Under the pieces are notes generated by a model, which saw only the letters and a list, made by a program, of their open reading frames with translations, was not told the DNA's origin and did not search any database. A program made the translations under genes and the position numbers. A stretch of DNA of 64,000 bases, taken from contig NIVC01001670.1 in the NCBI GenBank assembly GCA_002269645.1, positions 1 to 64,000 on the forward strand, in the 5' to 3' direction. This stretch comes from Macrostomum lignano. Lineage: Eukaryota. This document shows, one piece after another, positions 10,041 to 64,000 of this stretch (position 1 is the stretch's first letter; each line of letters opens with the position of its first letter).

Positions 10041-10302
10041 TAAGCTACTGAGAATTGAACTCGGGAATCGGGACTTCGAATTCGGATAAAATGCGTGAGT
10101 AAAGTCGCAGCAATCTGAGCATCAATTAATATTTACTGGTACTCTGGATAAAGTTGGGGAACACTCACAGACTCACTCAGGCAGAGATGCCCACGGGGAT
10201 TTCGCACATGTAGGGGAGTCCGTTGTACTTTTCCTCAGCTCGTAGTTTGCTGTGAGGATGGAACAGTAATTTTCAGGGGACAGTATGGACAGTAGCCCCG
10301 GG

Positions 10303-11710
10303 AACCAATCTTTTTGGCGCCCCGGGAACTCATCTCCTTGGCGCCCTGGGAACTCATCTTGGTGGGGCCCTGGGAACTCATCTCCTTGGCGCCCCGGGAA
10401 CTCATCTCCTTGGCGCCCAGGGAACTCATCTCCTTGGCGCCCCGGGAACTCATCTCCTTGGCGCCCCGGGAACTCATCTCCTTGGCGCCCCAGGGAACTC
10501 ATCTCGTTGGCGCCCAGGGAACTCATCTCCTTGGCGCCCCGGGAACTCATCTCCTTGGCGCCCCGGGAACTCATCTCCTTGGCGCCCAGGGAACTCATCT
10601 TCTTGGCGCCCCGGGAACTCATCTCCTTGGCGCCCCAGCAACTTATCTCCTTGGCGCACCGGGAACTCATCTTGGTGGGGCCCTGGGAACTTATCTCCTT
10701 GGCGCCCCGGGAACTCATCTCCTTGGCGCCCAGGGAACTCATCTCCTTGACGCCCAGGGAACTCATCTCCTTGGCGCCCCGGGAACTCATCTCCTTGGCG
10801 CCCCGGGAACTCATCTCGTTGGCGCCCAGGGAACTTATCTTCTTGGCGCCCAGGGAACTCATCTCCTTGGCGCCCCGGGAACTCATCTCCTTGGCGCCCC
10901 AGCAACTTATCTCCTTGGCGCCCCGGGAACTCATCTTGGTGGGGCCCTGGGAACTCATCTCCTTGGCGCCCCGGGAACTCATCTCCTTGGCGCCCAGGGA
11001 ACTCATCTTCTTGGCGCCCCGGGAACTCATCTCCTTGGCGCCCCGGGAACTCATCTCCTTGGCGCCCCGAGAACTCATCTCCTTGGCGCCCCAGCAACTT
11101 ATCTCCTTGGCGCCCCGGGAACTCATCTTGGTGGGGCCCTGGGAACTTATCTCCTTGGCGCCCAGGGAACTCATCTCCTTGGCGCCCAGGGAACTCATCT
11201 CCTTGGCGCCCAGGGAACTCATCTCCTTGGCGCCCAGGGAACTCATCTCCTTGGCGCCCAGGGAACTCATCTTCTTGGCGCCCAGGGAACTCATCTTCTT
11301 GGCGCCCCGGGAACTCATCTCCTTGGCGCCCCGGGAACTGGCGCCCCGGGAACTCATCTCGTTGGCGCCCAGGGAACTCATCTCCTTGGCGCCCCGGGAA
11401 CTCATCTCCTTGGCGCCCCGGGAACTCATCTCCTTGGCGCCCCGGGAACTCATCTTCTTGGCGCCCCGGGAACTCATCTCCTTGGCGCCCCGGGAACTCA
11501 TCTCCTTGGCGCCCCAGCAACTTATCTCCTTGGCGCCCCGGGAACTCATCTCCTTGGCGCCCCGGGAACTCATCTCCTTGGCGCCCCAGCAACTTATCTC
11601 CTTGGCGCCCCGGGAACTCATCTTGGTGGGGCCCTGGGAACTTTTCTCCTTGGCGCCCCGGCAACTCATCTTCTTGGTACCCTAGTAACTAATCTCCTTG
11701 GCGCCCCGGG
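10303..11710. repeat. 24-bp minisatellite (GGCGCCCCGGGAACTCATCTCCTT), more than 50 copies
   Basis: Direct periodicity; source of the 400-530 aa spurious ORFs. Confidence 0.95.
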
Positions 11711-12934
11711 AATTAATCTTGGCACCTTGTCCTTAGCTTTTGGCGCATTTGAAAGTCCAAAAAGATGTTTTAGGCAGTGGAATTCTCCTGAGCACTGGGG
11801 AACAAGCGAGGAGTCGCGGCGAACTTCCAGATTTGCCCTAGCAAAAATTCTTTGTTCCCGCAATAAAAAGAACTCCCAGTGCTTGAGAACTGTTTGCCTA
11901 GAAACAAGCGACTGAAGCGTCTAATGAAAACTAATTTTCAATCATTAGGGAAAAGTTGGCCCACAGCTTGAACGGGAAGAGCGGGAAGGATTAGGATTAG
12001 CAGTGCGTGGGTGAGCCTGGGCTGCCGCAGCTACCACGGTGTCCCCGTCAGTCCAGCTTCCTTCCTGGCACCGATGCAGTCCGGCCTCATGCATAATTAC
12101 AGTTCAGCATTCCCGCCCAGCCTTGGACTCTCGCAGCCCTTGTCTACTTCTCCCCGTTGCTAAGCTCAAACTGTGTTTTCCCTGCCGTGATCCGGGAGTA
12201 CTGCAGTAATTGCTGCCAGTTTGGCAGGCCCAGCCTGTATGCGCGGCAGATGGCCTTCAAATTGGATCGCCAACCCATGGATGAGCGGCGGTATCTCAGC
12301 CGCTCTCCTGAGCTAAATTAATTTGGCCCGCCAAAGCAGATTTGCATAAATGCTCAGCCGCTGCAGGGGCTCTGTCTGACCCGGCGGTTTGGCTTTCCCA
12401 GCCCTTGTAGCTTCGATGCCAAAAGATGAAGGAATTGGTGAGCAACAGAGGAGAATAGGTGGGGGGGGGGAGAATAATCCTCTCAGGCTTTTCTGAACTA
12501 CCGATATGTAGAGTAGCAAACTTATCTTGAAGGCAATGCATACGAGAGAAAAGGGTCTGATCGATTCTTTTACAGCTCGGTATGAAATGCACTTTATCGA
12601 TTGAAATTCGAATATATCTATTCGAAGTAACAAATATGGTCAAATATAGAATTTCCCCGCGGGATAAATTGCTGTGGCCCGGCCCTGCCCGCATCACTGC
12701 AGGCAGCTGTGCCGAATCCCCGCATTTGCTTGCCGCCAGGTCGGGGCTGCCAGCTGGGCCTCATCAGCTCAGCTCGGCTGTTGTTTTCCCCCTCGCCTCT
12801 CGCCCGAACTGGCGCGCCGGGCGGCTGCTCAAAGCGAGCCGAAATGCGGGAAACGAGCTGGAGTGGGACTGGGAGACCTTTGAGAGCTCTGCCTGCTGCC
12901 GCCCTCAGCAGCGCGGCATCTCCGCCTCTCACTT

Positions 12935-13510
12935 TGTCTCCCTTCCCCTCTGTGTCTCCCTTCCCCTCTCTGTGTCTCCCTTCCCCTCTCTGTGTCTCCC
13001 TTCCCCTCTCTGTGTCTCCCTTCCCCTCTCTGTGTCTCCCTTCCCCTCTCTGTGTCTCCCTTCCCCTCTCTGTGTCTCCCTTCCCCTCTCTGTGTCTCCC
13101 TTCCCCTCTCTGTGTCTCCCTTCCCCTCTCTGTGTCTCCCTTCCCCTCTCTGTGTCTCCCTTCCCCCCTCTGTGTCTTCCTTCCCCTCTCTGTGTCTCCC
13201 TTCCCCTCTCTGTGTCTCCCTTCCCCTCTCTGTGTCTCCCTTCCCCTCTCTGTGTCTCCCTTCCCCTCTCTGTGTTTCACTTCCCCTCTCTGTGTCTCCC
13301 TTCCCCTCTCTGTGTCTCCCTTCCCCTCTCTGTATCTCCCTTCCCCTCTCTGTGTCTCCCTTCCCCTCTCTGTGTCTCCCTTCTCCTCTCTGTGTCTCCC
13401 TTCCCCTCTCTGTGTCTCCCTTCCCCTCTCTGTGTCTCCCTTCCCCTCTCTGTGTCTCCCTTCCCCTCTCTGTGTCTCCCTTCCCCTCTCTGCGTCTTCC
13501 TTCCCCTCTC
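12935..13510. repeat. 20-bp pyrimidine-rich minisatellite (TTCCCCTCTCTGTGTCTCCC)
   Basis: Direct periodicity. Confidence 0.95.
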
Positions 13511-14207
13511 TCTATCTCCTTTTACCGCTGTCTATCTCTGGACTCCCCTTCAATAATAATAATACTAATTCCAGAAGCAATAAATTATAATTATAATAAG
13601 TCCCTGGCGCAACGTCTTTTGCCAACAATCTCCCATCCACTCCCTCCCTTTCTCTCTGCCTCCCTCTCTATTTCACAGCATCCCGTTCCCAAGGCTGTCG
13701 TCCCTCTTCAATACACTGCAGATTAATTTAAACAGACAGGCGCCTGTGGCGGAGGAGGGACAGAGGTCAAAATCTCAGGATGCAGGCCTCCTCGCTGTGT
13801 ATCCCAAGTGCCTACAAAAGTTACTAATAAATAACGCTAAGGTGTTGCTGGCAACCCGCCGTCCCTACTCGGTCAGCCCACGGGCCTAATTGGCTTCACC
13901 TTTAGTCATCCATGCCGCGGATATGCGGATCTTCCGCCCCTTGCTCTCCGGCCCCCCGCACCGGACCCAGCAATAGAGCAATATTAGTGCGGAAAGTGCA
14001 ATTACAGACAGACTTTTGCTGTCCTTCCGCCCCCCCCCCCCCAGCATAAAACTGATTCCCCTCCCTCAGTATTGCGCGCACTCTGCGCACTCCGCGCAGC
14101 CCCGCTGGCATTTGGCTGCCGCCCCCGCCGGCCAAAGTGCGCCGTCCGCTGCCGCCCGCCGTCTGCTGCTGCTGCTGCTGCTTTCTACTCTCCCCTTCCT
14201 CTCGCAA

Positions 14208-32074
<17,867 letters not shown>

Positions 32075-32099
32075 CGACCTGCGGCTGCTGGTGGCGGCC

Positions 32100-32850
32100 C
32101 GACTGCACTGCCCACTGCCCACTGCCCCGATTGCACTGCCCCACTGCCCCGATTGCACTGCCCCACTGCCCCGATTGCACTGCCCCGATTGCACTGCCCC
32201 ACTGCCCCGATTGCACTGCCCCACTGCCCCGATTGCACTGCCCACTGCCCCGATTGCACTGCCCCACTGCTTCGATTGCACTGCCCCACTGCCCCGATTG
32301 CACTGCCCCACTGCCCCGATTGCACTGCCCCGATTGCACTGCTTACTGCCCCGATTGCACTGCCCACTACCCCGATTGCACTGCCCACTGCCCCGATTGC
32401 ACTGCCCACTGCCCCGATTGCACTGCCCACTGCCCCGATTGCACTGCCCACTACCCCGATTGCACTGCCCTACTGCCTTGATTGCACTGCCTACTGCCCC
32501 GATTGCACTGCCCACTGCCCCGATTGCACTGCCTACTGCCCCGATTGCACTGCCCACTGCCCCGATTGCACTGCTCACTGTCCCGACTGCACTGCCTACT
32601 GCCCCGACTGCACTGCCCACTACCCCGATTGCACTGCCCTACTGCCTTGATTGCACTGCCTACTGCCCCGATTGCACTGCCCACTGCCCCGATTGCACTG
32701 CCTACTGCCCCGATTGCACTGCCCACTGCCCCGATTGCACTGCCTACTGCCCCGATTGCACTGCCCACTGCCCCGATTGCACTGCTCACTGTCCCGACTG
32801 CACTGCCCACTGCCCCGACTGCACTGCCCACTGCCCCGACTGCACTGCCC
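32100..32850. repeat. 21-22-bp repeat (CACTGCCCCGATTGCACTGCC) immediately 3' of the channel stop codon
   Basis: Direct periodicity. Confidence 0.9.
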
Positions 32851-35174
32851 GCCTTCAACCTACAAACCCGGAGACCGCTGCACCCGCTGCCCCAGCATGC
32901 CGCCTGGCTCAGCCGACTGCCAGCTTCAACGGGCGGCACAACACGGGAGCAGAAGCAGAAACTTAAACAAAACAGCGGCTTTAATCGCACGGTAGGCAGA
33001 ACTGACGTGCCGCTTGCTCTGCGGTTTGCATGCCGTTTCTCCGGTGTTGTTTCTCCTCTGCTTTATCAGCCTACTAATAGTAGAGATGACAGCTTCCTAA
33101 TGAAGAACCGGCCAACCCCCTGCTGCAGAACAAGATCCAGTTCTACCAGATGGTGGAAAGCCACGGCCGCGGCGCCAACCGCAAGAACTCAGTTGGAGCC
33201 GACCTGGCCCGGCGCCAGCATCACCAGCATCATCACCGGAGGAACCACAATCAGCTGACAGGTGGCGCCAGGTGACAGGCTGTTTGCTGTCCCTCGCCGC
33301 CTCTCTGTCCCCCCCCCTCCCCAAGCCGGTCCGCTCTTAGCCAGGACAATCAATGCGCCAAGTATAAATTATAGTTTCATATTTTTCTTTGCTGCTAATA
33401 AATACGAGCTACTTGTAATAATGATTCATCAACTTTCCTTTCGCCGTTACTGCACCAATTTCCCTGCAATCAATAACAGTCACGTGCAGCTCGCATGCAT
33501 CTGATGAGCAGTTTGAGTTCATCAGTTTTCTCCCGAACTCCCGAAGACTCCACAAGCCCCGAAAGGAACATCTTATTGCATTTTGCCCAGGTTTCGCTAT
33601 AATCACACCTGCAATCAGTTATAATTAATACTTCTCTTGCTGCTGTTGTTATACTTTGATGTCAATAGCGCGCCAAATTAAACTAATTCAAACGCAGCGA
33701 GGAGTTGTTGACCCCGCCGAGTCCCGGGCCTCTGCCTGTCCCGCGCTGTGGCAGCCCGTCACAGGCTCAATGAGTCAGCATTGTGTCAGATTGCAAATTT
33801 CCAAAAATATAAAGAGTAAATATTAATATCTTACTTTAACCCAGCAGTGATCTATCCGAATGAAACAGCAAGCCAACTCATTGATTTTAAATAATGAATT
33901 ATTAATTTCAAATAAATTGATTTATTTAGCAAAAACTTGACTGCCACATCCGTGAACTTGGTTGTAAAAACAAGCTCATTCTCTGACTACAAAAAACACA
34001 GTACGCCCGCATAAATAAATATAATTGATTTGTTTTATAGAAAAAACAAACGATAAGACTTGCGATAGTCTACTGAAAAAAGTAGACTGCCATGCGTGTG
34101 AACATTGGGTTTTTCACACGCTGGTCATTTTAAGAAGCTTATATATGGCACTGCAAAATCTACATGGGCTTCATTCACGCATAGTTCACAGACTCTCCGC
34201 AATGCTCACACAATCCCCGCAAAATTCACACACACCCTTCATCATTCACAACCTAGCATAACTCATTCACACACTCGAAGAAGTATCCAAAATCATTCAC
34301 GCAATCCTAGCATCGTTCACCCACTCGCAGCAGCATTCACACTCTCTCGCACACCGTGATGAAAGCTCATCGGACTCAAACACAGGCTGCGCCAATATCG
34401 ATCTTGAGCTCTGCTCAGCGAAAGGGATATCTGTTTGACCAGTGGCTGGGGCGACTGTAGCGGCTCTGATCCCAAATTCCTTTCCTCCTCCTCATCCTCC
34501 TCCTCCGCTGCATCCTCGTTTCCTGAGTCCTTCTAGGGGCAGAAATCGTCTCTCTCTCTCTCTCTTCCCTCCTTCGGATGCTTTTTTCACCCCGCACTTT
34601 CAGTCTGCACAGCACAGGCCGGCAGCCAAGCGTACGCACTGGGGGTTTCACTGCTCGGTTCGAGTGGCAGTAGAGTTGATCTCGTATTCAACTGGGGGAC
34701 AGCCGGTTAAAGCCACCACCCAGAGCAGCGAGCAATCCTCTAGCTCACAGTTGAGTGGAGGGGATTTCATCCCGCCGGAGGGAGGGACAGCGTCGAAGAA
34801 GGGAGAGTGGGGATTAATGCTAGAAAAGGGGGGGAAGAGAAGAGAGGAAGAGAGGCAGCAGAGAGCTAATAGAGATGAGGAATCCGATGGGAAGAGGGAG
34901 CGGAGCTCAGCCGACACCAGCCTCTCGAATCCGCAGCCCCCGTTGCTGAGTTGGGCAGGCAGCGAGGCGAGAAAGAATAAGAAATGCAGCGAGCCTCGAG
35001 GGCGCAGGGATGCGAGCCAAAAATCTACAAAGCGGCCAGGCGGGCAGCGGCTTGCCAGGCACTTGGGGCAGCAGCGACCACGCCCGCTAGCCCTGACTGG
35101 CTACGGTGCAAGCGGACTTGAGCACTGGCCCAGATTCTAATACTCAGAGCCACACCTGGACACTTGGGCGAGCA

Positions 35175-36822
35175 ATGCGGCCATCTGGCGAACTCGGCGG
35201 CATTGCAGCCGCCTTCTGGCCCCGGCGTCACGGGCGCCTTCGCTGGCGGCTGGTGCAGACTGGCGCGGCCGCCCTGCTGCTGTCCGCCCTGCTGCTCTAC
35301 CTGACCTCGTCGTCTACCGCCCGACATATGTCGGCCCTGTCAGTCTTGCCGACTGTCGGGCAGTCGTCTCAACGACGTCTCCTGCTGGAGGCAGCAGTGA
35401 TTAACGAATCGGTTAACAGCAACTTGTCCGAACGGCAGCTGCAGCTGAGCAAAAAATACTGGGCAAAGGTAGAGTAGAGTAGATTAGAATAGAGTAGAGT
35501 AGAGTAGAGTAGAGGAGAGTAGAGTAGAGTAGAGTAGAGTAGAGGAGAGTAGAGTAGAGTAGAGTAGAGGAGAGTAGAGTAGAGTAGAGTAGAGTAGATT
35601 AAAATAGAGTAGAGTAGAGTAGAGTAGAGCAGAGTAGAGTAGAGTAGAGTAGAGTAGAGTAGATTAAAATAGAGTAGAGTAGAGTAGAGTAGAGTAGAGT
35701 AGAGTAGAGTAGAGTAGAGTAGAGCAGAGTAGAGTAGAGTAGAGTAGAGTAGAGTAGATTAAAATAGAGTAGAGTAGAGTAGAGTAGAGTAGAGTAGAGT
35801 AGAGTAGAGTAGAGTAGAGTAGAGTAGAGTAGAGTAGAGCAGAGTAAGGTAGAGTAAGCTGAATTCATTTTCTGTTTGTTTTCCAGGTGCAGCTGCACTT
35901 TTCCAACGGCGGCGCCGACTCCCCACACTACCGGATGCTTGAGTCCCGATGCAGCGTCCCCGACAACGAGACCGAGCCGATCCAGGCGCTCCAGTTGCCC
36001 CCGACCGGCTTCTCCGACCACCCCTACCTGATCAACTCCGGCCCCTGCACCGGCCGCGTCTCCATCGTCCTCGCCGTTCACTCGGCCATCGGGCACTCGG
36101 ACCGGCGCCGTGTCATCCGCGAGACCTGGGGCAGCGTCCGCTACGTCCGCGGCCGCCGGCTGCTGCTCGTTTTCTTTCTCGGCCGGCCGGCCGGCGACGC
36201 CGAGCAGCGGCAGCAGGCCGCAGTGGCGGAGGAGGCGGCCCGCCACCAGGACATTGTGCAGCGCGACTTTGTTGACAGCTACAGGAACATGACCATCAAG
36301 CACCTGGGCATCTACGACTGGCTGTTCGAGTTCTGCAAGTCCGCCGACTGGCTCGTCAAGGTCGACGACGATGTGTTTGTCGACGTCTTCCACCTGGAGG
36401 CGTTTCTCAGCACCTACCGGCCGGGCGCTGGGCTCTGCTGCAAGGTGCAGAGCGGCAGGCCGGAGCGAGTCCCCAGCGACAAGTGGTTCGTCACCAGGCG
36501 GGAGTTCCCCGGCGACAAGTACCCGAAGTACTGCGAAGGCTACGCCTACATCATCAAGCCAACGCTCGCCCGGCTGCTCTACTGGTGCTCCGTGTTCTCC
36601 AGACGTCTGTGGATCGATGACGTCTACGTGCTGGGCATCCTGGTGCAGCGGCTGGGCCTCCGGCACCAGCCAGCCCTGCAGGGTCACCTGTGGGCCGACC
36701 TGCTGCCCAGCCACATGGGAAAGGCCATCGTTGATAACGTCTTCCTGGTGGACAGGCACAACGGACTCCAGGGCAGCACCTGGCGGAGACTGCACAGGGC
36801 TGCTGTGAAGTACTCCTACTGA
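35175..36822 (+). CDS. GT31-family beta-1,3-galactosyltransferase-like type II membrane protein, about 409 aa, 2 exons
   Basis: Exon 1 35175-35468 (MRPSG..., TM segment AAALLLSALLLYL); intron 35469-35886; exon 2 35887-36822 with GT31 motifs VFFLG, DIVQRDFVDSYRNMTIK, WLVKVDDDVFV (DxD), YPKYCEGYAYII, IDDVYVLG; AATAAA near 36926. Confidence 0.92.
35469..35855. repeat. (AGAGT)n pentanucleotide array filling the GT31 intron from the donor onward
   Basis: The donor AAG|GTAGAG is the first unit of the array. Confidence 0.95.
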
Positions 36823-37665
36823 CCTGCCTGCGCGCACACAGGCTGCTGTACGAGTGTTGATACGCGCATTAACAAACGTATTTATTTTTGTTAATATCGA
36901 TAAGAATATTGTTTACATGTTGCAAAATAAAATTGAGAAAATAACTTTAGATTTCTTTTTATTGATCGATCGGTTTTATTAATCCGAAATTGAATTATCA
37001 ATCACAATTTTCTGTCACTTTAGAGTCACGATTGCCTCCACCAAAAATGATGCCGACCGACTGATGCCACAGCAGCCCTAAAAGGAAGATTGTATAAATT
37101 ATCGAGTGAATTCAGTGCACTCAACCGGCGAGGGCCATTGCTTGCCCATTCCGCCGACTCCCCTGAGCAGGCGCACAAGCGCGCGGATACGTACGCAGGC
37201 ACACACTCACACAGGAGTGTACAGCGGCCCTAACTTTATTTATCGTTAGGCATGTACACTTCACTGCGCCTTGCGGGTTGGCCCTCAAGGGCGTTTAAAA
37301 TTGCACGAGCAGAGCCAAGCCGAGATTCCAATTCAGCCCCAAATTAATGCGACTGCACTTGGAATCGAGCCTGGGCCGCTGGAACATCAGAGCGCCGCGC
37401 TGGGCGTTAAAGATGGTTAATTATAATTATTATGGTTAATGAAGAACGGTATTGAACGAGAAGAGAAATAAGGGGATTGTAGATAAGATTAGATAAGCTA
37501 ACGAAGATAAGGTAAGGACCAGACCAGGGCATGGGGTTTCGGGTGGAGAGGCCAGCCCCCCATTTTAATAAGAGCAGGCTCTTTTTCAGCTGAGAATCTG
37601 GGACGCCCTGGGTGAAGCATGCACTGGTCAGTTGTTTCAAGTGAATGCTGACGCACCGCATTGAG

Positions 37666-37993
37666 CTACTGGAGAATGATAGCCTCTACCGTAGTGGCGT
37701 CCATTTGCAGAAGGTCGTCAAGGCTTTTTGGCGCCTCTGTGGTCTCCTGTTCGTGAGCTCGCATTTTCTGAACGAACGGCTTCAGCTTCTGGATGCACTG
37801 AGACACCCCCTTGGGGTCCGGCATCGGGCGGTCGGTGGGCGGAGAGCCCTGGGACGGCGAGGTCTCTAAAAGTTCAAGTAAAAAATGCAAGTAAACAATG
37901 ATTTGCAGTATCCTAATTAACATAATGAGCTCACTCACCGAGCACCAGGATCAGGGCGAACAGCAGAACAGTTGACAGGCAGAGAGTTCGCAT
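37666..37993 (-). CDS. Small secreted peptide, paralog 1 (84 aa: MRTLCLSTVLLFALILVLETSPSQGSPPTDRPMPDPKGVSQCIQKLKPFVQKMRAHEQETTEAPKSLDDLLQMDATTVEAIILQ)
   Basis: Exon 1 37993-37939 (hydrophobic signal peptide, donor G|GTGAGT, phase 1); 73-nt intron; exon 2 37865-37666. Confidence 0.75.
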
Positions 37994-38859
37994 TGTGGAA
38001 GCGTTGGCAGTGCGTGACTATGCGGCAAAACTAATTGAGTCGAGTCAGTTGAGTCTTATCTGCAATGCTCCGAGCACCTCATATTTATTTATTTCTGCAT
38101 CCGCGCCCACTCAAAGTCAAGTGCAGACTTCTTTAGCAGGCAATTAATTTTCCGGTTTCGATTGCTCTCAGTTTTCAGACAGCTGTTTCTACTGCGATCT
38201 TAGGATTTAAACGCCCACCAAACTTTGAGTTTCCGTGCTCAGGTGTGCCACAAAAAACCGAGAAACAAATCAAAGGAGAAAATGAATGCCCCCGAGCAAC
38301 AGATTACAGCGAAAGTGCTGATTACATGAGGATTTGGTGACAGATGAGGCTTCAACTGAGTCCTCGGTCCCAGATCGGATTTCGGTGTGAAAGCCACAGC
38401 TGGCGGGCCAGAAATTATAATGAAAAATATACTGTGCTACTCTATATGCCCTCAGAGTTAAGTAGTTCACGAACTCAAAGAGACTTAACTTCAGAGAACA
38501 CAAGTTTCCTTTTAACTTTATTGGGAATGGGAACAGCTCAATCGCTGTAAAAAATCCCAATATCTTTGCACCTTATAGACTTCAGAATTACAAATGGAAA
38601 AAGTTTTATTGGAAAGCGACACATTGCAGGTTGATATCAATCCGCATAGGAAAAATGCACCCAAACAGATGGGAACAATTGGTGTCGCTTTTGGCGATCT
38701 AAATGGGAATTTGGACAATCAAAACAAGACGCCACGGACATTCAAGCCAGGCCAAAGACTCGGGCTGCTTGGGAATACACAGCCATAGAATGTGGAACGG
38801 ACAATAAAAATGGGAAAGTGCCATTCAAAACGGGAATTCGCCCAATTTATAATTTGTTG

Positions 38860-39030
38860 ACAGCTGGCTTCGGTGCTTTCAACCTGCTGTGGGGCAGCGA
38901 ACCCGACCAGGGCCACGAAGGCGCCGCGGAGGCCCGTCGCCTCATTGACTGGTGTATCACCACCAGCTACCGGATCCTAAATAATGGGGAGCACACGTGC
39001 GTAGACCGGCGCTCGGGCCGCACCTCCATT
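38860..39030 (+). mobile_element. Relic of a non-LTR retrotransposon APE endonuclease
   Basis: Translation FNLLWGS...LIDWCITTSYRILNNGEHTCVDRRSGRTS resembles the LWG...L.DW...ILN.G..T...G..S segment of LINE endonucleases; GDLN near 38692; no RT domain seen. Confidence 0.55.
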
Positions 39031-39530
39031 ACATTTGCCAAATTCCAAGTTGGAAAATTATAATAAAATATGGTGCTTGTCAATTTAGCTTAGATCTACA
39101 AATACGTGCATCTATAGCACAGGTTAGATAATCCTAGATAATTGACTCCCTCGTTGATTCCAGGGAAATTGTATCGCTCACTGCTAGAGATTACTATCAG
39201 TGCAGTAGTCTGTACGGTACAGATATAACAATTATTAAGATTCACCAATAAACTCTGTAATCTCATCAGTCTGATTCAATGTTTTTTATAGTAGCTCGTA
39301 GATCATACTTGGATCGTCAGAAATTTTGAATTAAAATGCGTTTGCGCTACTGAACTGACGAGTAGTTTATCGTCAACGAGCATTTGCGCACTTGTAGGGA
39401 TTCTTTATCAAAATTGAGCGAAAAGCAATTCGAGAAGAAATTTGGCTTGAAATGTCTATTAACCACACTTAAATATGAACGTTCATTTATTCAGAATATC
39501 TCAGCCAGTCGGGCGAGCTCTGATGTCTTC

Positions 39531-40380
39531 TCATCTCTGATGAAAGAATCCAGCTCGAAGGTCTATCTGGAGGAACATGGCTACTTCAATGTCCGGCTCA
39601 GTTACTTTGGCGGAGGCGGTGAACTCCGACTCGCTGGTGGTGTTGAACAGTTCCGCTAGCAGACCCAGAAGCTGCTGCACCCTGTGGTGGCTCAGATTTG
39701 GCTGCTCCGATGCTGTTCGGACCGGATGGCGGCGTGGCTGCCGTCACGTCTGGAATTAAACCGGAACGGAGTTCAGGGACTGCCTGGCACTGAATACCGG
39801 TCTCTTCTACACTGCACTATCCAGTCTCTATCCAGTCTCTATCTAGCCTCTATCCAGTCTCTATCTAGCCTCTATCCAGTCTCTATCTAGCCTCTATCCA
39901 GTCTCTATCCATTCTCTATCTAGTCTCTATCTAGTCTCTATCCAGTCTCTATCCAGTCTCTATCCATTCTCTATCTAGTCTCTATCTAGTCTCTATCCAG
40001 TCTCTATCCAGACGCTATCCAGTCTCTATCCAGTCTCTATCCAGTCTCTATCCATTCTCTATCTAGCCTCTATCCAGTCTCTATCCAGTCTCTATCTAGC
40101 CTCTATTGCAGTCTATATCCATTCTCTATCCAGTCTCTATCCAGTCTCTATCTAGCCTCTATCCAGTCTCTATCCAGTCTCTATCCATTCTCTATCCAGT
40201 CTCTATCTAGCCTCTATCCAGTCTCTATCCAGTCTCTATCCAGTCTCTATCCAGTCTCTATCCAGTCTCTATCCAGTCTCTATCCAGTCTCTATCCGGTC
40301 TCTATCCAGTTCCGCATGTGAAACTCACCGATCAACATTGTCACAAAAAGGCAGACGAGAATGGCGGAGACGAGTCGCAT
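39531..40380 (-). pseudogene. Small secreted peptide, paralog 2; frameshifted relative to paralog 3 or using a shifted acceptor
   Basis: Exon 1 40380-40329 (MRLVSAILVCLFVTMLI, phase 1). The acceptor homologous to paralog 3 (ATTCCAG|AC, 39749) puts the conserved block EQPNL..VQQLLGLLAELFNTTSESE out of frame; AACAG|CA 37 nt downstream would restore it. The 3' UTR and AATAAA (39486-39491) are homologous to paralog 3. Confidence 0.6.
39815..40310. repeat. 11-bp intronic repeat (CTCTATCCAGT)
   Basis: Direct periodicity. Confidence 0.92.
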
Positions 40381-41360
40381 TGTTACGGTCAAAGTCTGCT
40401 TGGTAGAGAACAAGTGAGTCCTGGCTGCGTCAGTTCACCGATCGAGTCCCCAGTTCTGAGCAGTGTGCCAGAATTTATACCAAAAAGTGCCATAGACACC
40501 TGATAGCCCTTCAAATTTGAATTCTGTTTGAAAAAAGTTGCACTCGAATATGATTTAGAAAATGGCAAAATTCAGAACTCAAGTGTTCCATGCCTCAAGC
40601 ACCTGAATAGTTTCAGGTGCTTGAATAGTGAGTAAGTCTCTCAGCAGGCTCCCCCAGTGAGTGACGTGGCAGCTACTGATAAAGTTTCTCAGGCTGTTTG
40701 CAGCTGACAACAAATGCCTATCCGCAGTCGAAAAAATGTGCGAGACTTATGCAGGCATCCAGTCTTAAGAAAAGCATGTGATATTGCTATGCCCCGAAGG
40801 CTTAAGTCAAACGTTTTGGGGGAAGCAGGCAAGGAATTCAAGATGTTTCCAGAGCTGGATGACGGTGCAAAAAAGGGGTGACGAGGGCATCGTGGGATAA
40901 GCGAGTGGAACTATCCCGGAGGGAGGTGATTTTTACAGACGGATCAGGCAAAATGGAGTCAAGTGTCATCCGCAGTGAAGAGAGTGTACCGAGGACACAA
41001 GCAACAAAATACCGTGTCAGATATGATACAACCACATAGAGTCTCAGGCGCCTCTCTGGGCTAGGGCTGCACCGCTGACCAAACCCGGAGCGCCGAAATC
41101 AAGTGACTTTCATAGGTTTGATTCAGATCTTAATTTAAAATGAGTTTGTACTACTCAACTGACAAGTAGTTTATCGTAAAACTATATCGAAACCAGCAGT
41201 CGTGCACTTTCAGGATAAAAAAATGAACGAAAATCAATAGATTTGCTTGAAGTGTCTCTTAACCAGATTTTTTAATGAGAATTTATTTGTTCAGAATATT
41301 TCAGCCAGTCAGCGAGCGCTGATATCTGCTCATCTCAGACGGAGAATCCAGCTGGGAGGT

Positions 41361-42517
41361 CTATTGGAGGATAATTTTTGCTTGCGCCTGGTGCAGCTGA
41401 TTATCTGACTTGTCGACCGGCTTCAGAAGGGGGGCGACGGTTGTGGGCTCCGGCTCACTGGTGGTGACCCGGCCCAGCAATTTCTGCAGAATACCCAGCA
41501 GCTTCTGCAGATTGGGCTTCTCTTTTTGGTTCTTGTGATCCCGGTTTTTAAAAATGAACGGCGTGACGGTCGAAACGTCTGGAATGAGATCGATTTGGAG
41601 TTCACAGAGTTCGTTAAAGCTGAGCATTCCACAAGATCGGGTCTCTCTCTCCTCTACTGAATTGGAGCCTATCCTGCCTATATCCAGTTTCTATCTAGCC
41701 TATAATCCAGTTTCTATCTAGCCTATAATCCAGTTTCTATCTAGCCTATATCCAGTTTCTATCCTGCCTATATCCAGTTTCTATCCTGCCTATATCCAGT
41801 TTCTATCCTGCCTATATCCAGTTTCTATCCTGCCTATATCCAGTTTCTATCCTGCCTATATCCAGTTTCTATCTAGCCTACATCCAGTTTCTATCTAGCC
41901 TATATCCAGTTTCTATCTAGCCTACATCCAGTTTCTATCTAGCCTACATCCAGTTTCTATCCTGCCTATATCCAGTTTCTATCTAGCCTACATCCAGTTT
42001 CTATCTAGCCTATATCCAGTTTCTATCTAGCCTACATCCAGTCTTTATCCTGCTTATATCAAGTCTATCTAGTCTCTATCAAGTCTATATCTAGTCTCTA
42101 TCAAGTCTATATCTAGTCTCTATCAAGTCTATATCTAGTCTCTATCAAGTCTATATCTAGTCTCTATCAAGTCTATATCTAGTCTCTATCAAGTCTATAT
42201 CTAGTCTCTATCAAGTCTATATCTAGTCTCTATCAAGTCTATATCTAGTCTCTATCAAGTCTATATCTAGTCTCTATCAAGTCTATATCTAGTCTCTATC
42301 AAGTCTATATCTAGTCCCTAATTAGTCTGTATCTAGTCTCTTTCTATTCCTCATCTTCTCTTCTCTTATACTATTTCTCGCTCAATTCCGCCCCCTCCTG
42401 AGAGACAGGAGGCATCCACGGCTTTCTCCGAATGCTTTGATCGCCAGCCCCGAGCTGGAACTCACCGATCAGCAGAGCCACAAAAAGGCACACAACAATT
42501 GAGGAGGCAATTCGCAT
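41361..42517 (-). CDS. Small secreted peptide, paralog 3 (89 aa: MRIASSIVVCLFVALLIDVSTVTPFIFKNRDHKNQKEKPNLQKLLGILQKLLGRVTTSEPEPTTVAPLLKPVDKSDNQLHQAQAKIILQ)
   Basis: Exon 1 42517-42466 (signal peptide, G|GTGAGT); exon 2 41578-41361; AATAAA 41282-41287; TATATAAA-like box near 42601-42608 on the minus strand. Confidence 0.8.
41665..42340. repeat. Intronic arrays of about 20-22 bp (CCAGTTTCTATCTAGCCTATA; CTCTATCAAGTCTATATCTAGT)
   Basis: Direct periodicity. Confidence 0.9.
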
Positions 42518-42560
42518 TGTTCCTGTCAAAGCCTGCTTTAAGCTGAGCACAAATGAGTAT

Positions 42561-42573
42561 TGCTGACTCAGCT
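42561..42573. promoter_or_regulatory. MARE/AP-1-like element TGCTGACTCAGCT upstream of peptide paralog 3
   Basis: 12/13 match to the T-MARE TGCTGACTCAGCA, between the TATA-like box and the ATG; function untested. Confidence 0.25.
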
Positions 42574-43216
42574 CCCCTGTTCTCTTTCGGGGCATCAAAT
42601 TTATATAGTAAAAATTCAATGGCAAAAAGTCAGTCAGCTGCTCTTCAAGCCCAAATTAAGTGAATTCTGCGTCTTTTTTTCGCAGAATGCAAAACTTTAA
42701 GTGTCCTTTTTGAATCAGAAGTGTTTTGAAAAGTGGAAAATTTCTCTCAGTATTTCTAAAAAACACTTGCAGCTGCGGATAAAGTTTCAGCCTCTTTTTC
42801 TCCTTTTTCTTCCAAATATCTCGACAGCAGCGGGAAAGCAGATGTGCTCAAGATCTGCTGAGAGCTGAGGCGAGAAATTCCTGCCATCGCAACTCAACTC
42901 TCTGACCTCTCGGCAGCTGAAGGAAACTGATTAAACTTGTGCAAATTTACCTTATGAAGGTGGGACTGAATGCCTTTGAGTAAGCTTTGAGTAAACTTTT
43001 CATGACCCGAGTTCCACGCCAATTAGGGACCAACCCAAAATCAAATAAATCGTTTATTTTATTTTTTGTTTGTGGGGAGCCGCCATTGCAACCGGGGCGG
43101 CACAGAAGATAAATAGCGGAGGTGCTTCCCAGCACTCTACCGTCTATTCTCCCCGAGGAAAAAGAGAGCAATCACTGACAATAATACACTGAAGATACAC
43201 TCGTAGTTGCCAAGCT

Positions 43217-43972
43217 ATGAGGTGCGAATTAGCCGTCGCAATTCTGATCCTGAGCAGCCAGTTGGAGCCAGCCGAGGCCGTCTGTCCCGCGCCGTTCGCA
43301 ACCGAGGCGGGCAGGTGTGTATTCATAAGCCAACCGCAGGCCTACAGCTGGTGCGAGGCCAACCTGCAGTGCGAAGGCCTCGGAGGCGAGCTCATCAACT
43401 CGTACAGCTCGCTGAAGCTGCTGGCCGGCATGCCGAGCTTTCAATGCGCCGACACGAGCAGGAGCTGCGGTGTGTGGCTCGGGGTGACCGACCTGGCCGA
43501 GGAGAGGGGGGCCAACAGGTCCGGCTGGCAGCTGGGGAACAGGAACGGCGTTCTTCCCCTGAACGACTCCCTGTGATCCCCCGACATGCCCAGCAGCAAA
43601 AGCAGCAACCAGGACTGCCTGTCCACCTCCGGCTTCTCAACTGAACTCATCGATCTGAAGTGCTCAACTCTGCGCGGATTTGCCTGCGAGTTCGTGGGAG
43701 CCGCGGCCCGGAATTTGACGGTGAGAGCCACGTGGCGGCGGGTGCAGTTCAGGCGCTCGGACTTCAACCCCAGCTCTGAGTACTGCTATGCGGATGTGCA
43801 GCGAGTGCTCAGCCCGATTCACTGCCTGGCGGCCGCCACCAAAGCTGGCAAAAGCAAGGACCTGCTGTACAACAGCAAGCTGAGGACCTGCCGTCTGCTG
43901 CTGTTCTCTGACTCCCAGGTGCAGGAGCAGATCGAGACCAGCGCCGACTGGGTGAAGTTCAGCGCCTACTGA
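43217..43972 (+). pseudogene. Secreted C-type lectin domain + PAN/apple-like domain gene with an in-frame TGA (43574-43576)
   Basis: Single frame: signal peptide; CTLD motifs CPAPF...GRC, SWCEANLQCEGLGGEL, VWLGVTD, QDC, DLKCSTLRGFACE; C-terminal HCLAA..LLYNSKLRTCRLL. The TGA in DSL*SPDMP sits at the expected CTLD Trp. AATAAA near 44223. Confidence 0.8.
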
Positions 43973-44454
43973 CGCGCGAAAGGCCCCGATGCGAGTGGGT
44001 GTCCGGAATCAAATTTCACCAAAGCTCCGTTCTCTAAACGTTTCCCAAAGAGACAGCGTCTCAACCCCACTGCAATTAATAATTAAATACTCTGGAGCTT
44101 GCACCTGTCCGGTGCACAGGTTGTTGCACAAGTGTATCGATTTGTATTCTAACAAAATACAACTTGATTACTCCAGCCATGTGAACTCCAGGTCTCCATG
44201 GTCTCTCCAAGATAATCGCATCGAATAAAAAATAAACTGAACATCATTTTTTGTTCGGCCAGGCAAAGTCAATTGAAAAAAACAAAGCAACACTTTTTAT
44301 CATTCCTATGTTGCCACGCGTTAAAATTGCGAAGCAATTTGTTTTCAGCATGTTAAACGAAAGATACCACAGAAACTGCGTTATGCGGCAAAAGTGACCG
44401 CATATGATTTCTCTGTCAACAGCTTAGCCGCATCTCGCCTCTCCACCTGCCACT

Positions 44455-44825
44455 CCGCTGCCGCTCCGCCTGCCTCTTCACCTGCCGCTCCACCTGCCGC
44501 TCCGCCTGCCGCTCCGCCTGCCGCTCCGCCTGCCGCTCCGCCTGCCGCTCAGCTTGCCGCTCCGCCTGCCGCTCCGCCTGCCTCTCCACCTGCCGCTCCG
44601 CTTGCCGCTCCGCCTGCCGCTCCGCCTGCCGCTCAGCTTGCCGCTCCGCCTGCCGCTCCGCCTGCCGCTCCGCCTGCCTCTCCACCTGCCGCTCCGCCTG
44701 CCGCTCCGCCTGCCGCTCCGCCTGCCGCTCCGCCAGCCGCTCCGCCTGCCGCTCCGCCTGCCGCTCCGCCTGCCGCTCCGCCTGCCGCTCCGCCTGCCGC
44801 TCCGCCTGCCGCTCCGCCTGCCGCT
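44455..44825. repeat. 12-bp repeat (CCGCTCCGCCTG)
   Basis: Direct periodicity. Confidence 0.92.
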
Positions 44826-49394: not shown

Positions 49395-51961
49395 TCAGAG
49401 CTCATCCCGCTCCCTGGCCAGAATCTCCATCATCTCCCTGACTGTCCGGTCGAACTGCAGGAAGTGCCGATCGATGTCGCGCAGCCGCTCAACCGGTTGG
49501 CCTTCGACTTCGGCCAAGTCCACCAAGGAGTCGCCGTTGGTGTCGAATGCCTTGAACACCTGTTGATGACCGGGCATGGATAAGATGGCGCTGAGCGATC
49601 CAGCCAGCCAGCCAGCTCGAGGGGCGCAAAGAAAGGGTGGGGGATGGGGTGGGGAGGGGGGCATGAAGGCTATGAGGGAGGGGGCATGAGGGAGGGGGCA
49701 TGAAAGAGGGGGGAATGAGGGAGGGGGCATGAAGGAGGGGGGAATGAGGGAGGGGGCATGAAGGAGGGGGAATGAGGGAGGGGGCATGAATGAAGGGGGG
49801 AATGAGGGAGGGGGCATGAAGGAGGGGTCATGAAGGAGAGGGGAATGAGGGAGGGGGACATGGGAGAGGGGCATGAGGGAGGGGCATGAGGGAGGGGCAT
49901 GAGGGAGGGGGCCATGAGGGAGGGGCATGAGGGAGGGGCATGAGGGAGGGGCCATGAGGGAGGGGCATGAGGGAGGGGCATGAGGGAGGGGGCCATGAGG
50001 GAGGGGCATGAGGGAGGGGCATGAGGGAGGGGCATGAGGGAGGGGGCCATGAGGGAGGGGGCTCTGTAGGGATGTGCAGCATGAAGGGGCGCCCACCGCA
50101 GGGAAACACCATCAGCAAACAACAAGAGCGCGCACACAAAACAACTTACAATGCTGAGCTCGTCAACAAACCGGTCACCGAAACGAGTCTTCAATTCGCC
50201 GTGCTCCTGAAAACAAACAGAACAAGGATTGACTCTTTAAGTACAATGAAGTTCCCACAGTTCCCCTCCATTCACAGTGCTACTCTATTCACACAGCCGC
50301 TCTCCATTCACAGTGCCACTCTATTCACACAGCTCCCCCTCAATTCACAGTGTCACTCTATTCACACAGCGGCTCTCCATTCACAGTGCCACTGTATTCA
50401 CACAGCCCCTCTCCATTCACAGTGCCACTCTATTCACACAGCTCCCCCTCCATTCACAGTGCCACTCTTTTCACAAAGTCCCTCTCCATTCACAGCGCCA
50501 CTCTATTCACACAGCCCCTCTCCATTCACAGTGCCACTCTGTTCACACAGCTCCCCCCTCCATTCACAGTGCCACTCTATTCACACAGTCCCTCTCCATT
50601 CACAGTGCCACTCTTTTCACACAGTCCCTCTCCATTCACAGTGCCACTCTATTCACACAGTCCCTCTCCATTCACAGTGCCACTCTTTTCACACAGTCCC
50701 TCTCCATTCACAGTGCCACTCTTTTCACACAGTCCCTCTCCATTCACAGTGCCACTCTATTCACACAGTCCCTCTCCATTCACAGTGCTACTCTTTTCAC
50801 ACAGTCCCTCTCCATTCACAGTGCCACTCTATTCACACAGCCCCTCTCCATTCACAGTGCCACTCTTTTCACACAGCTCCCCTCCATTCACAGTGCCACT
50901 CTATTCACACAGCTCCCCCTCAATTCACAGTGTCACTCTATTCACACAGCGGCTCTCCATTCACAGTGCCACTGTATTCACACAGCCCCTCTCCATTCAC
51001 AGTGCCACTCTATTCACACAGCCCCTCTCCATTCACAGTGCCACTCTTTTCACACAGCTCCCCTCCATTCACAGTGCCACTCTATTCACACAGTCCCTCT
51101 CCATTCACAGTGCCACTCTTTTCACACAGTCCCTCTCCATTCACAGTGCCACTCTATTCACACAGCCCCTCTCCATTCACAGTGCCACTCTATTCACACA
51201 GTCCCTCTCCATTCCCAGTGCCACTCTTTTCACACAGTCCCTCTCCATTCACAGTGCCACTCTTTTCACACAGTCCCTCTCCATTCACAGTGCCACTCTA
51301 TTCACACAGTCCCTCTCCATTCACAGTGCCACTCTTTTCACACAGTCCCTCTCCATTCACAGTGCCACTCTATTCACACAGTCCCTCTCCATTCACAGTG
51401 CTACTCTTTTCACACAGTCCCTCTCCATTCACAGTGCCACTCTATTCACACAGCCCCTCTCCATTCACAGTGCCACTCTTTTCACACAGCTCCCCTCCAT
51501 TCACAGTGCCACTCTATTCACACAGCTCTCACCGGCACGATGCGGTCAAGCAGGGCCGCAAAGTCCAGCGGACCGGCGGCCTGGCGCAGCGTCTCGGCGA
51601 ACAGGTCGGTGGGGGGCCGGTAGCCGAAGCCCTTGAAGCTGGCCGTGTCGATCAGCCAGGCCGGGTCCGGCCGCTCCTCGTTGCAGTTGTCGGTGGCGCG
51701 GACCAGCGCGGTGTCGAACCAGAGGTTGACGGCGATGTTGCGGCCGTAGGAGCGGACTTGGTGGATCCACTTGAACGGGATGTACAGGCAGTCGCCGGGA
51801 AACAGGTGGGCGATATAGAACTGAACGTCAGCCATGCCGGGGTAGGCGCGGAAGTCGACGGAGTCCACGTCCATGGAGGAGTAGGAGCCTTCCGGCCTGT
51901 CGATGGGCACCCGGTGGCCGTGCACTGCCGGGTCAACCTGTGGGGCGGGAGGGGCTGGGTG

Positions 51962-52030
<69 letters not shown>

Positions 52031-52057
52031 CACACACACACAGACAGACAGACAGAC

Positions 52058-52118
<61 letters not shown>

Positions 52119-52141
52119 CACACACAGACAGACAGACAGAC

Positions 52142-52206
<65 letters not shown>

Positions 52207-52211
52207 CACAC

Positions 52212-52294
<83 letters not shown>

Positions 52295-53599
52295 CACACA
52301 CAGACGGACAGACAGACTAAGACAGACACAGACAGACACAGACAGACAGACAGACAGACGGACAGACAGACAGACACACACACAGACAGACAGACGGACA
52401 CACAGACAGACAGACACACAGACAGACCATAACAAAAGTTTTGTTCCCGCGCAGCACGCAGTTAAGGTTGTCCACAGCGTCTGTGTGCACCACTGAGCTG
52501 GTGCCGCCGCTGCTGAACCAGACGATGGCTTCGACCAAGGCACCCGCCACATCGGGGCACTGCAGGCTCCAAGGCAGGGGAAAGTCGGGCGCCAGGAAGC
52601 GGGGCATGCTGGCCACCATGTAGTGGCCTGAGGTGTTGTAGGAGCGCACGAACTGATGGAATGGCGTATCGTAGGTTCGCTGCTGCCGGCTCTCCTTCTT
52701 GGTGGTCTCCACATGCACCTGCGAGCGATGGTAACTGACTGACTGACTGACTGACTGACTGACTGACTGACTGACTGACTGACTGACTGACTGACTGACT
52801 GACTGACTGACTGACTGACTGACTGACTGACTGACTGACTGACTGACTGACTGACTGACTGACTGACTGACTGACTGACTGACTGACTGACTGACTGACT
52901 GACTGACTGACTGACTGACTGACTGACTGACTGACTGACTGACCTGAGAGCTGTTGGGATCTAGCGGCAGTTGCAGGAAGTAGTCATCGTCCCACATGCG
53001 GAAGGCGCGGGTCTGTCTTGCTGCGCCGCGCATCAGCAGGGGCCGAAGCTGGCGCACCTGCTCCTGGTAAAACCGGCCGGGCGGCGGGAAGCCGTCAGCC
53101 AACTCGGGCACGGGCAGCTGGGGATGCCTTCAGGCGGAGTGGAGATGACTCGACCATGTGCTTTAATGCCCGACAGAGCCCCCTATGTGCCTTAATGTCC
53201 GATAGAGCCTCCTATGTACTTTAATGTGCGACAGAACTTCTATGTACTTTAATGTCCGGTAGAGCCCCTTATGTACTTTAATGTCGCATGGAGCCCCTCA
53301 TGTACTTTAATGTCCGATACAGCATTTATGTACTTCAATGTACCTGCTACTGCACACTTGTACTTGCATAGCCGCACACACACTTCCCCCGCTCACCTGG
53401 AAGTCCCAAACGGACGTTTATGGCCGATCCCGTACGCCTCCTCGCCGCCGTCCAGCAAGTCCAGCCAGTAGCAGCAGAAGCAACCGCAGCCGGCAAGCAG
53501 AAGCAACAAAGTTGTAACAATAATAAACGGCTTCAAACGCCCAGGTGGCGAGGTGCTCGCCAAGCCCGACGTCTCCGAGCTGCTCGTTGCGCCTGTCAT
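49395..53599 (-). CDS. JmjC/Cupin_8 2-oxoglutarate oxygenase-like protein with N-terminal hydrophobic segment, EF-hand and C-terminal RDEL, about 434 aa, 6 exons
   Basis: Exons 53599-53397, 53127-52944, 52718-52428, 51937-51533, 50206-50150 and 49559-49395 with consistent phases. Motifs: [29 protein letters not shown] (HxD), [17 protein letters not shown] (distal His), [12 protein letters not shown] (EF-hand loop), terminal RDEL. Confidence 0.88.
49660..50062. repeat. 13-14-bp G-rich repeat (GAGGGAGGGGCAT)
   Basis: Direct periodicity. Confidence 0.88.
50265..51527. repeat. 36-bp intronic minisatellite (CCCTCTCCATTCACAGTGCCACTCTATTCACACAGT)
   Basis: Fills the intron 50207-51532. Confidence 0.95.
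51960..52427. repeat. (GACA)n/(CA)n intronic microsatellite
   Basis: Direct periodicity up to the donor. Confidence 0.95.
52733..52943. repeat. (GACT)n microsatellite forming nearly an entire 225-nt intron
   Basis: Direct periodicity. Confidence 0.95.
53160..53340. repeat. Degenerate repeat of about 29 bp (TATGTACTTTAATGTCCGATAGAGCC)
   Basis: About 6 diverged copies. Confidence 0.7.

Positions 53600-56233: not shown

Positions 56234-64000
<7,767 letters not shown>

Follow-up and report, generated by a model that had tools for sequence, protein, structure and literature searches.

A putative lineage-restricted mini-cluster of small secretory-protein genes in the flatworm Macrostomum lignano

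Introduction

Lineage-restricted families of secreted peptides, exemplified by the conotoxin superfamilies, the frog-skin preprodermaseptins and the arminins and periculins of Hydra, combine a conserved signal peptide and untranslated region (UTR) with a hypervariable mature region. The scorpion non-disulfide-bridged precursors of antimicrobial peptides (AMPs) of the IsCT/BmKn2 type consist of a signal, the mature peptide, a G-K/R-R site and an acidic propeptide. The neuropeptide/prohormone genes of flatworms (npp/spp), reportedly described by McVeigh in 2009 and by Collins in 2010, encode short signal-bearing precursors that are often lineage-specific. Here, we analyzed a cluster of three small genes, g1, g2 and g3, located at positions 37666–42517 on the minus strand of a 64 kb stretch of DNA (further referred to as the window) of contig NIVC01001670.1 in the Macrostomum lignano assembly Mlig_3_7 (GCA_002269645.1). 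A preliminary description had presented these genes as a tandem family of fast-evolving secreted peptides.

Approximately 35–45% of the M. lignano genes are Macrostomum-specific (PMC5816591), and almost none of them has a function. The species is transgenic and amenable to RNA interference. A small, transcribed cluster of secreted orphan products whose duplication history is clear, whose mature region diverges and one of whose copies may be re-framed offers a tractable case of the origin and decay of secreted effectors.

Results

Both strands of the whole 64 kb were scanned for an ATG followed by a hydrophobic open reading frame (ORF) and a GTRAGT donor, and nothing besides the first exons of g1, g2 and g3 was found; hence, the three-gene cluster is genuine rather than a product of chance. 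The same scan of 20-kb stretches of two other contigs returned only these three exons in the unchanged order. The locus is present three times in the assembly, in the window (locus L003, exactly 47993–27666) and in two further contigs (L002 and L004, the latter in NIVC01001256.1). Mlig_3_7 is redundant, the sequenced DV1 line carrying extra chromosome copies (PMC5730564). Splicing confirmed the expected structure of the three minus-strand, two-exon genes. Each starts with ATGCGA (M-R), continues with a hydrophobic stretch of 15–16 residues and ends its first exon, whose coding part has 52–55 nt, at a phase-1 G/GTGAGT donor, with the second exon encoding the mature product (Table 1).

For the GenBank annotation of Mlig_3_7, only RNA-seq data and de novo transcripts were used (StringTie/TACO, at least 0.5 reads per kilobase per million, TransDecoder ORFs), and transcripts that were non-coding or overlapped repeats were discarded (PMC5730564, PMC5816591). 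Since the coding sequences annotated in this way match our splice models of g1 and g3, both models have RNA support, and spliced transcripts of the two genes do exist. The spliced g1 product (84 aa) is exactly PAA65258.1/PAA66588.1/PAA70239.1, 'hypothetical protein BOX15_Mlig032925g1/g3', and equals UniRef A0A267EYK5; related older models carry the name 'Secreted protein'. Two of the older models, P0002 and P0003 (A0A1I8IBH3 and A0A1I8HVM3, found in UniRef only and without a GenBank accession), diverge after ...MDATT and may have been spliced at GTAGAG after ACG, while the GenBank Mlig_3_7 model continues to VEAIILQ and the stop.

The g3 model (89 aa) is 100% identical over its 89 aa to the annotated protein P0004 (Mlig028569g1, 115 aa), which is the same model preceded by 26 residues from an upstream in-frame ATG. 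This ATG has been shifted out of frame by indels in the two further genome copies, and P0005 (81 aa, 73% identical to g3), the protein annotated there, begins at MRIASS; therefore, the 26-aa extension is probably an annotation artefact. Both g1 and g3 are thus already deposited in GenBank as hypothetical proteins; the cluster itself is undescribed.

Neither g1 nor g2 nor g3 matched Pfam-A at E ≤ 1. A word-indexed search of 5.8 billion proteins with g1, g3 and g2 (the latter in the g3-like frame discussed below) returned only the M. lignano copies of these proteins, and a full profile search with HMMER, covering 1.84 billion representatives, only M. lignano's own copy, so the proposed lineage specificity was borne out. 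The products also look secreted, as had been proposed, judging by the hydrophobic N-terminal signal and by the name 'Secreted protein' given to the g1 cluster in UniProt.

Most motifs quoted in the preliminary description were recovered: CIQKLKPFVQKMR and NLQKLLGILQKLLGR were present, as were the TTSEPEPTT spacer and the AKIILQ end of g3, and the ETTEAP spacer and the EAIILQ end of g1. The 7-residue internal repeat of g3 proved to be a real tandem duplication of 2 x 21 nt in the DNA (41510–41469), which encodes a duplicated LQKLLG[IR] heptad. The g2 motif VQQLLGLLAELF...TTSESE...AMFLQ, by contrast, lies outside the phase-1 frame. The cores, called amphipathic, had hydrophobic moments of 0.49–0.61, which is only moderate and not above shuffled controls. 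The net charge of the mature proteins was +4 for g3, +5 for its copy, −3 for g1 and −4 for g2, that of the core +2 to +3 for g3 and −1 for g2 (VQQLLGLLAELF), and the g1 core contains a central proline. AlphaFold2, run for mature g3 with a small alignment, predicted one helix over LQKLLGILQKLLGRV with a predicted local distance difference test (pLDDT) value of ~81 for the block and disorder elsewhere (mean pLDDT 62). For g1, it predicted the signal helix, a helix of moderate confidence at residues 36–57 and weak C-terminal helices (mean pLDDT 62). In their composition, the linkers of Thr, Pro and Glu (TTSEPEPTT, MPEPTTTP and ETTEAP) look like mucin-type O-glycosylation sites.

Judging from their sequences, g2 and g3 are clear paralogues and the only provable pair among the three genes. 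The g2 protein in the g3-like frame shares 44% identity with g3 over 73 aa (blastp, E 1e-14), their alignment exceeded shuffles with z = 8.8–9.7, and the high-scoring DNA segment pairs cover exon 1 as well as exon 2 with the 3'UTR. The related minisatellite units of 11 bp (45 copies) and 22 bp (29 copies) are confined, within the window, to the g2 and g3 introns. The pair probably arose by tandem duplication of a ~2.1-kb unit in which the intron minisatellite was already present.

The family of three was thereby upheld for g2 and g3, but not by significant sequence similarity for g1. Comparison of g1 with g2/g3 gave E ~0.1 in blastp, p = 0.03–0.12 in local and global alignments against shuffles and a probability of 0.65% in hhalign, and the profile of g3, P0005 and g2 searched against the 1.84 billion representatives retrieved only P0005 and not the g1 cluster. 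A weak colinear match of the exon-1 DNA (69% over 67 nt, E 0.007 in low-stringency blastn) was obtained in a tiny search space. The common origin is suggested by the architecture: g1 shares with g2 and g3 the strand, adjacency at ~2.1–2.4 kb spacing, the MR start encoded by ATGCGA, the signal exon of 52–55 nt and the phase-1 GTGAGT intron, and its helix, T/E/P linker and terminal -I-I-L-Q stop follow the same order as in g3. We lean, on these grounds, towards g1 being a possible, very diverged relative of g2 and g3.

The competing explanation, that g1 is unrelated and that the exon structure and the IILQ end merely coincide between neighbouring small secreted-protein genes, is a somewhat weaker one, to which we nevertheless attach considerable weight. 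It accounts for the lack of significance in all four protein tests, and g1 has neither an intronic minisatellite nor 3'UTR similarity to the other two genes. A phase-1 intron behind a signal exon is, moreover, a generic arrangement, reportedly common in eukaryotes according to Tordai and Patthy (2004), and sharing it is therefore weak evidence of kinship. It has to contend with the common strand, spacing and start, the colinear exon-1 match, the identical order of helix, TTE/P linker and ...I-I-L-Q stop, and the lack of any further exon of this type in the 64 kb.

The g2 gene, presented originally as an intact member, turned out to be frame-disrupted and unannotated. Read in phase 1, exon 2 runs to a stop at 39598 and gives a 67-aa product, MRLVSAILVCLFVTMLI-D-VTAATPPSGPNSIGAAKSEPPQGAAASGSASGTVQHHQRVGVHRLRQSN and stop, ending ...DVTAATPPSGPNSIGAAKSEPPQGAAASGSASGTVQHHQRVGVHRLRQSN. 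The frame homologous to g3 occupies 39710–39534 (SEQPNLSHHRVQQLLGLLAELF...AMFLQIDLRAGFFHQR, stop codon 39533–39531) and is separated from the g3-like exon-2 start by indels of −1 and +2. A 1-nt insertion turned CCAATAG into CCAGATAG, so that the stop of the family was lost and the frame continues to ...FLQIDLRAGFFHQR, 11 codons beyond the LQ end. This arrangement is common to all four g2 copies in the assembly, which carry no further indels or stops. Neither frame matched any protein in GenBank, UniProt or a collection of 15 billion proteins, and the transcript-based annotation left g2 out in all three contigs. Because the frame is shifted, the stop displaced and no protein annotated, g2 has probably become a pseudogene or else a gene in a new frame. 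We consider it likely that it is a pseudogene or non-coding, most plausibly a young pseudogene that would have kept the promoter, the signal exon, the splice sites and the 3'UTR of g3 with exon 2 frame-shifted.

A functional g2, whose exon 2 would be translated in the g3-like frame after use of an alternative acceptor or else in the new, overprinted phase-1 frame, is rather unlikely, although g2 does not look like a simply decaying sequence. The TATA box, the signal-exon ORF, the GTGAGT donor, the TTCCAG acceptor and AATAAA are all conserved relative to g3, as are the first ~115 nt of the 3'UTR, next to distal flanks that cannot be aligned (3'UTR identity ~72–82%). An alternative AG 37 nt downstream of the acceptor (gaacag/CA, exon start 39712), found in four of four copies, would restore the g3-like frame and give an open 77-aa product, but its pyrimidine tract is weak and C-rich. 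Substitutions among the four copies are mostly hydrophobic-for-hydrophobic in the g3-like frame (L/I, F/L, L/M, M/I); nevertheless, pN is at least equal to pS in both candidate frames, so the substitutions do not decide which of them is used. The missing protein matches, the absence from the annotation and the lost stop after LQ also speak for a pseudogene.

In the L004 copy (3650–5235), g2 exon 2 is duplicated, and the two copies are separated by the 11-bp intron minisatellite. The array appears to drive local rearrangement. In a similar manner, the length of the g3 intron, 887 nt in the window and 523 and 570 nt in the other copies, varies with the size of its minisatellite array.

The DNA identity between g2 and g3 amounts to 77% in the signal exon and 72% in the 3'UTR, in comparison with 57% in the mature-peptide exon, which also contains many indels. 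As far as the alignments tell, the signal exon and the 3'UTR are thus better conserved than the mature exon, a pattern typical of diversifying secreted-peptide families. In the alignment of 41211–41360 with 39413–39562 (minus strand), the first ~115 nt, up to the poly(A) signal, are ~82% identical, more than the coding exon. The conservation of the 3'UTR hints at a regulatory element or at local gene conversion.

The claim of fast evolution held for a part of g3 but not for g1. The g3 protein of the window differs from those of the other two copies by 27% plus a 7-codon indel, and the overall dN/dS between genome copies is 1.2–1.4. The N-terminal half with the signal and the helix gave 0.67 and the C-terminal half 1.5–1.8; based on ~28 substitutions, the values are not significantly above 1 and would indicate relaxed or positive selection without proving either. 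The whole g1 gene, intron included, is identical in all three contigs (328/328 nt), whereas its downstream flank differs by 1.1–1.8%.

Across g3 and g2 (window ~38930–44480, L003 3517–9061), the genome copies are 85–93% identical, compared with 96–98% from g1 onwards (L003 9374–15644); for noncoding DNA, the respective values are 85–89% in the g3/g2 segment and 96–98% around g1. This several-fold higher divergence is explicable by any of three causes, namely haplotypes that have diverged, a relaxed constraint or mutation driven by the repeats. Between g2 and g1, L002 (6368–9373) and L004 (5726–9374) contain ~3 kb of extra DNA that is absent at ~38620–38933 of the window. In an ORF of this insert, a Cys/His-rich, zinc-finger-like segment comes after a 2A-like DIETNPGP motif; this combination points to a fragment of a non-LTR (long terminal repeat) retroelement.

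Table 1. Elements of the three-gene cluster (window coordinates).
Gene	Feature	Position	Strand	Details
g3	TATA box	42599..42607	−	TATATAAAT; 82–90 nt upstream of the MRIASS start codon; kept in both other genome copies
g3	Upstream in-frame ATG	42584..42595	−	4 nt after the TATA box; gives the 26-aa N-terminal extension
g3	Exon 1, coding part	42466..42517	−	52 nt; MRIASSIVVCLFVALLI + G of the split codon; signal peptide
g3	Intron	41579..42465	−	887 nt, phase 1, GTGAGT...TTCCAG; mostly 22-bp minisatellite (41669–42314, 29 copies)
g3	Exon 2, coding part with stop	41361..41578	−	DVSTVTPFIFKNRDHKNQKEKPNLQKLLGILQKLLGRVTTSEPEPTTVAPLLKPVDKSDNQLHQAQAKIILQ, stop
g3	3'UTR	41271..41360	−	poly(A) signals AATAAA (41287–41282) and ATTAAA (41276–41271)
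g2	TATA box	40473..40479	−	TATAAAT
g2	Exon 1, coding part	40329..40380	−	52 nt; MRLVSAILVCLFVTMLI + G; same in all genome copies
g2	Intron	39750..40328	−	579 nt, phase 1; almost wholly 11-bp minisatellite, unit AGACTGGATAG on the minus strand (39817–40310, 45 copies, related to the g3 intron array)
g2	Exon 2 through poly(A) signal	39486..39749	−	AATAAA at 39491–39486
g1	Putative TATA-like A/T block	38081..38094	−	AAATAAATAAATAT; ~90–100 nt upstream of the ATG; less canonical
g1	Exon 1, coding part	37939..37993	−	55 nt; MRTLCLSTVLLFALILVL + G; signal peptide
g1	Intron	37866..37938	−	73 nt, phase 1, GTGAGT...TTTTAG; without minisatellite
g1	Exon 2, coding part with stop	37666..37865	−	ETSPSQGSPPTDRPMPDPKGVSQCIQKLKPFVQKMRAHEQETTEAPKSLDDLLQMDATTVEAIILQ, stop
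g1	Variant poly(A) signal	37564..37569	−	ATTAAA; ~100 nt past the stop

Directly downstream of g1, at 35887–36822 on the plus strand, there is a single long ORF with a strong match to Galactosyl_T (GT31 beta-1,3-galactosyltransferase, Pfam E 1.3e-41), which is missing from the GenBank gene calls for this contig stretch. As no N-terminal membrane anchor is visible in it, the ORF may have a further exon upstream or be part of a pseudogene. The annotated multi-exon gene of a Cys-loop ligand-gated ion channel (Neur_chan_LBD; 27666–33275, plus strand, equal to L003 14719–20328, minus) adjoins the cluster in all three genome copies. An ORF at 24292–25329 (plus strand) has stretches that resemble, by eye, the channel transmembrane segments and could represent a further exon or a separate gene. 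On the other side, exons of a cupin/JmjC-type hydroxylase (51518–53111, minus strand, Cupin_8 E 6e-14) are broken up by long (GTCT)n-type microsatellites read through as CLSV repeats.

The window consists largely of micro- and minisatellite arrays, which are the source of most long 'ORFs' in all six frames. Examples lie at 4684–5257, 6744–8018, 10173–11915, 12992–13726, 15599–16129, 18730–19816, 21464–22189, 24907–26264, 50021–52063, 57283–58844, 59759–60987 and 63494–63991. This richness is consistent with the simple/tandem repeat content of 15% in the M. lignano genome (PMC5730564). A scan for bacterial promoters and terminators found nothing above chance and is irrelevant to eukaryotic DNA.

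Discussion

Altogether, the original observation was largely correct and well above chance, and the presence of a lineage-specific secreted family is supported in outline. The likely explanation is a mini-cluster of orphan (taxonomically restricted) genes for small secretory proteins in M. lignano. Each gene would comprise a TATA-type promoter, a first exon corresponding approximately to a signal peptide for the endoplasmic reticulum (ER) and, behind the phase-1 intron, a second exon for the whole mature product. The g3 gene is taken to be intact and transcribed, and its mature polypeptide of ~72 aa would be basic and largely disordered, with one short Leu-rich amphipathic helix, the Thr/Pro/Glu linker and a hydrophobic -I-L-Q C-terminus. 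The adjacent, transcribed g1, with the same architecture and -IILQ end, would be either a very diverged member or an unrelated neighbour. The exon-1 signal presumably directs the product co-translationally to the ER and is removed, and an unfolded, possibly O-glycosylated peptide may then be secreted from a specialised secretory cell, its helix mediating self-association or binding to a partner or a membrane. Outside the cell, the products may serve defence, gland secretion, reproduction or signalling. Nothing in the cluster points to a new mechanism.

In a full-text literature search, no paper mentioned the gene IDs, accessions or peptide strings. Several observations weigh against this picture. 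The evidence for secretion consists of the hydrophobic N-terminus and the name that UniProt assigned automatically, and the O-glycosylation sites are read from the composition of the linkers. None of the protein-similarity statistics backs the membership of g1, whose exon arrangement is shared with many eukaryotic genes. As mentioned above, the dN/dS of g3 comes from few substitutions, and the ratio of pN to pS in g2 favours neither of its frames.

An improbable idea is that the products are seminal-fluid proteins of prostate gland cells, comparable to those of the Mlig-pro genes, with a divergence driven by sexual conflict. In M. lignano, at least 76 transcripts are limited to the prostate, the majority of them predicted to be secreted and 11 without an identifiable ORF (PMC5977470), reproduction-related Macrostomum genes evolve fast according to PMC7336406 and PMC8662610, and dN/dS in the C-terminal half of g3 is at least 1. 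The identity of g1 in three copies is, however, unlike a fast arms race. Additional file 16 of Brand 2020 lists the primers of all M. lignano transcripts tested by in situ hybridization (ISH), Mlig-pro1-76 included, and none of its forward primers matches within the initial ~135 nt of the g1 and g3 mRNAs. When 7-mers tiled over this part of both mRNAs were compared with the table, only chance matches to unrelated primers were obtained (forward primers, one haplotype); hence, g1 and g3 were probably never tested by ISH. The gene IDs were also unmatched in the supplements of PMC5977470, PMC5816591, PMC7336406, PMC12896417 and PMC5730564, which is uninformative because GenBank took its BOX15 IDs from transcriptome v1 and the later papers rely on a re-clustered version, v3 (PMC5816591). 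The literature search found no single-cell atlas of M. lignano.

A bolder variant of the orphan-cluster reading would make g3/g2 a hypervariable effector locus with strongly diverged haplotypes, positive or balancing selection on the C-terminal half of a secreted, helix-bearing peptide that acts in host defence or as a mating allohormone, and a re-framed instead of a dead g2. We find it doubtful, still more so than the seminal-fluid idea. If true, it would give free-living flatworms a first rapidly diversifying family of effector peptides defined at the molecular level.

The least tenable proposal, that g3 and its neighbours are precursors of short cationic, C-terminally amidated alpha-helical AMPs of the scorpion type, cut after G-R to ...LQKLLGILQKLL-amide, draws on the duplicated LQKLLG heptad in a predicted helix, the core charge of +2 to +3 with a hydrophobic moment of ~0.5, the G-R and Thr/Glu/Pro-rich tail behind the g3 core and the fast-evolving mature region. 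We rejected it, since the G-R is unconserved (D-R in P0005 as well as in the third copy, absent in g2 and g1), an N-terminal processing site is lacking (22 residues, VSTVTPFIFKNRDHKNQKEKPN, none of them dibasic, intervene between the g3 signal and the helix) and the charge is inconsistent among members (g2 core VQQLLGLLAELF at −1 without G-R, g1 core with proline and mature g1 at −3). The g3 site is, in addition, monobasic and lacks a basic residue at both P4 and P6, the amphipathic moment does not exceed that of shuffled controls, and neither Pfam nor profile searches indicated similarity to any AMP family. The amidated-AMP mechanism put forward in the preliminary description is, accordingly, not supported.

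The orphan cluster has points in common with each of the known systems. Like the scorpion IsCT/BmKn2 precursors, its products have ~70–90 aa, a Leu/Lys-rich helix and, in one copy, a Gly and a basic residue after the helix. Unlike in these precursors, the helix is not directly behind the signal, the site is monobasic and replaced by D-R in P0005, the tail is not acidic overall, and there is no sequence homology. With the flatworm npp/spp genes, g1–g3 share short, signal-peptide-bearing and lineage-specific precursors, but no repeated or conserved peptide between dibasic sites and no conserved C-terminal Gly are present here, and conservation is highest in the signal peptide and the helix instead of in a short bioactive core. 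Mlig-pro1-76 (Weber et al. 2018, PMC5977470) come from the same species, are small and mostly orphan, with BLAST hits for few of them, and often have signal peptides; in contrast to them, g1 and g3 were unmatched by the primers of the ISH compendium.

From the families of the conotoxin, preprodermaseptin and arminin type, the cluster differs in that it lacks a cysteine framework as well as a conserved pro-region and conserved processing sites and has only two provable members, one of which is probably dead. It resembles them in being small and tandem, in carrying the signal peptide on an exon of its own before a phase-1 intron, in the higher identity of the signal exon (77%) and the UTR (72%) than of the mature exon (57%), in a dN/dS of at least 1 in part of the mature region and in the absence of homologues outside the lineage.

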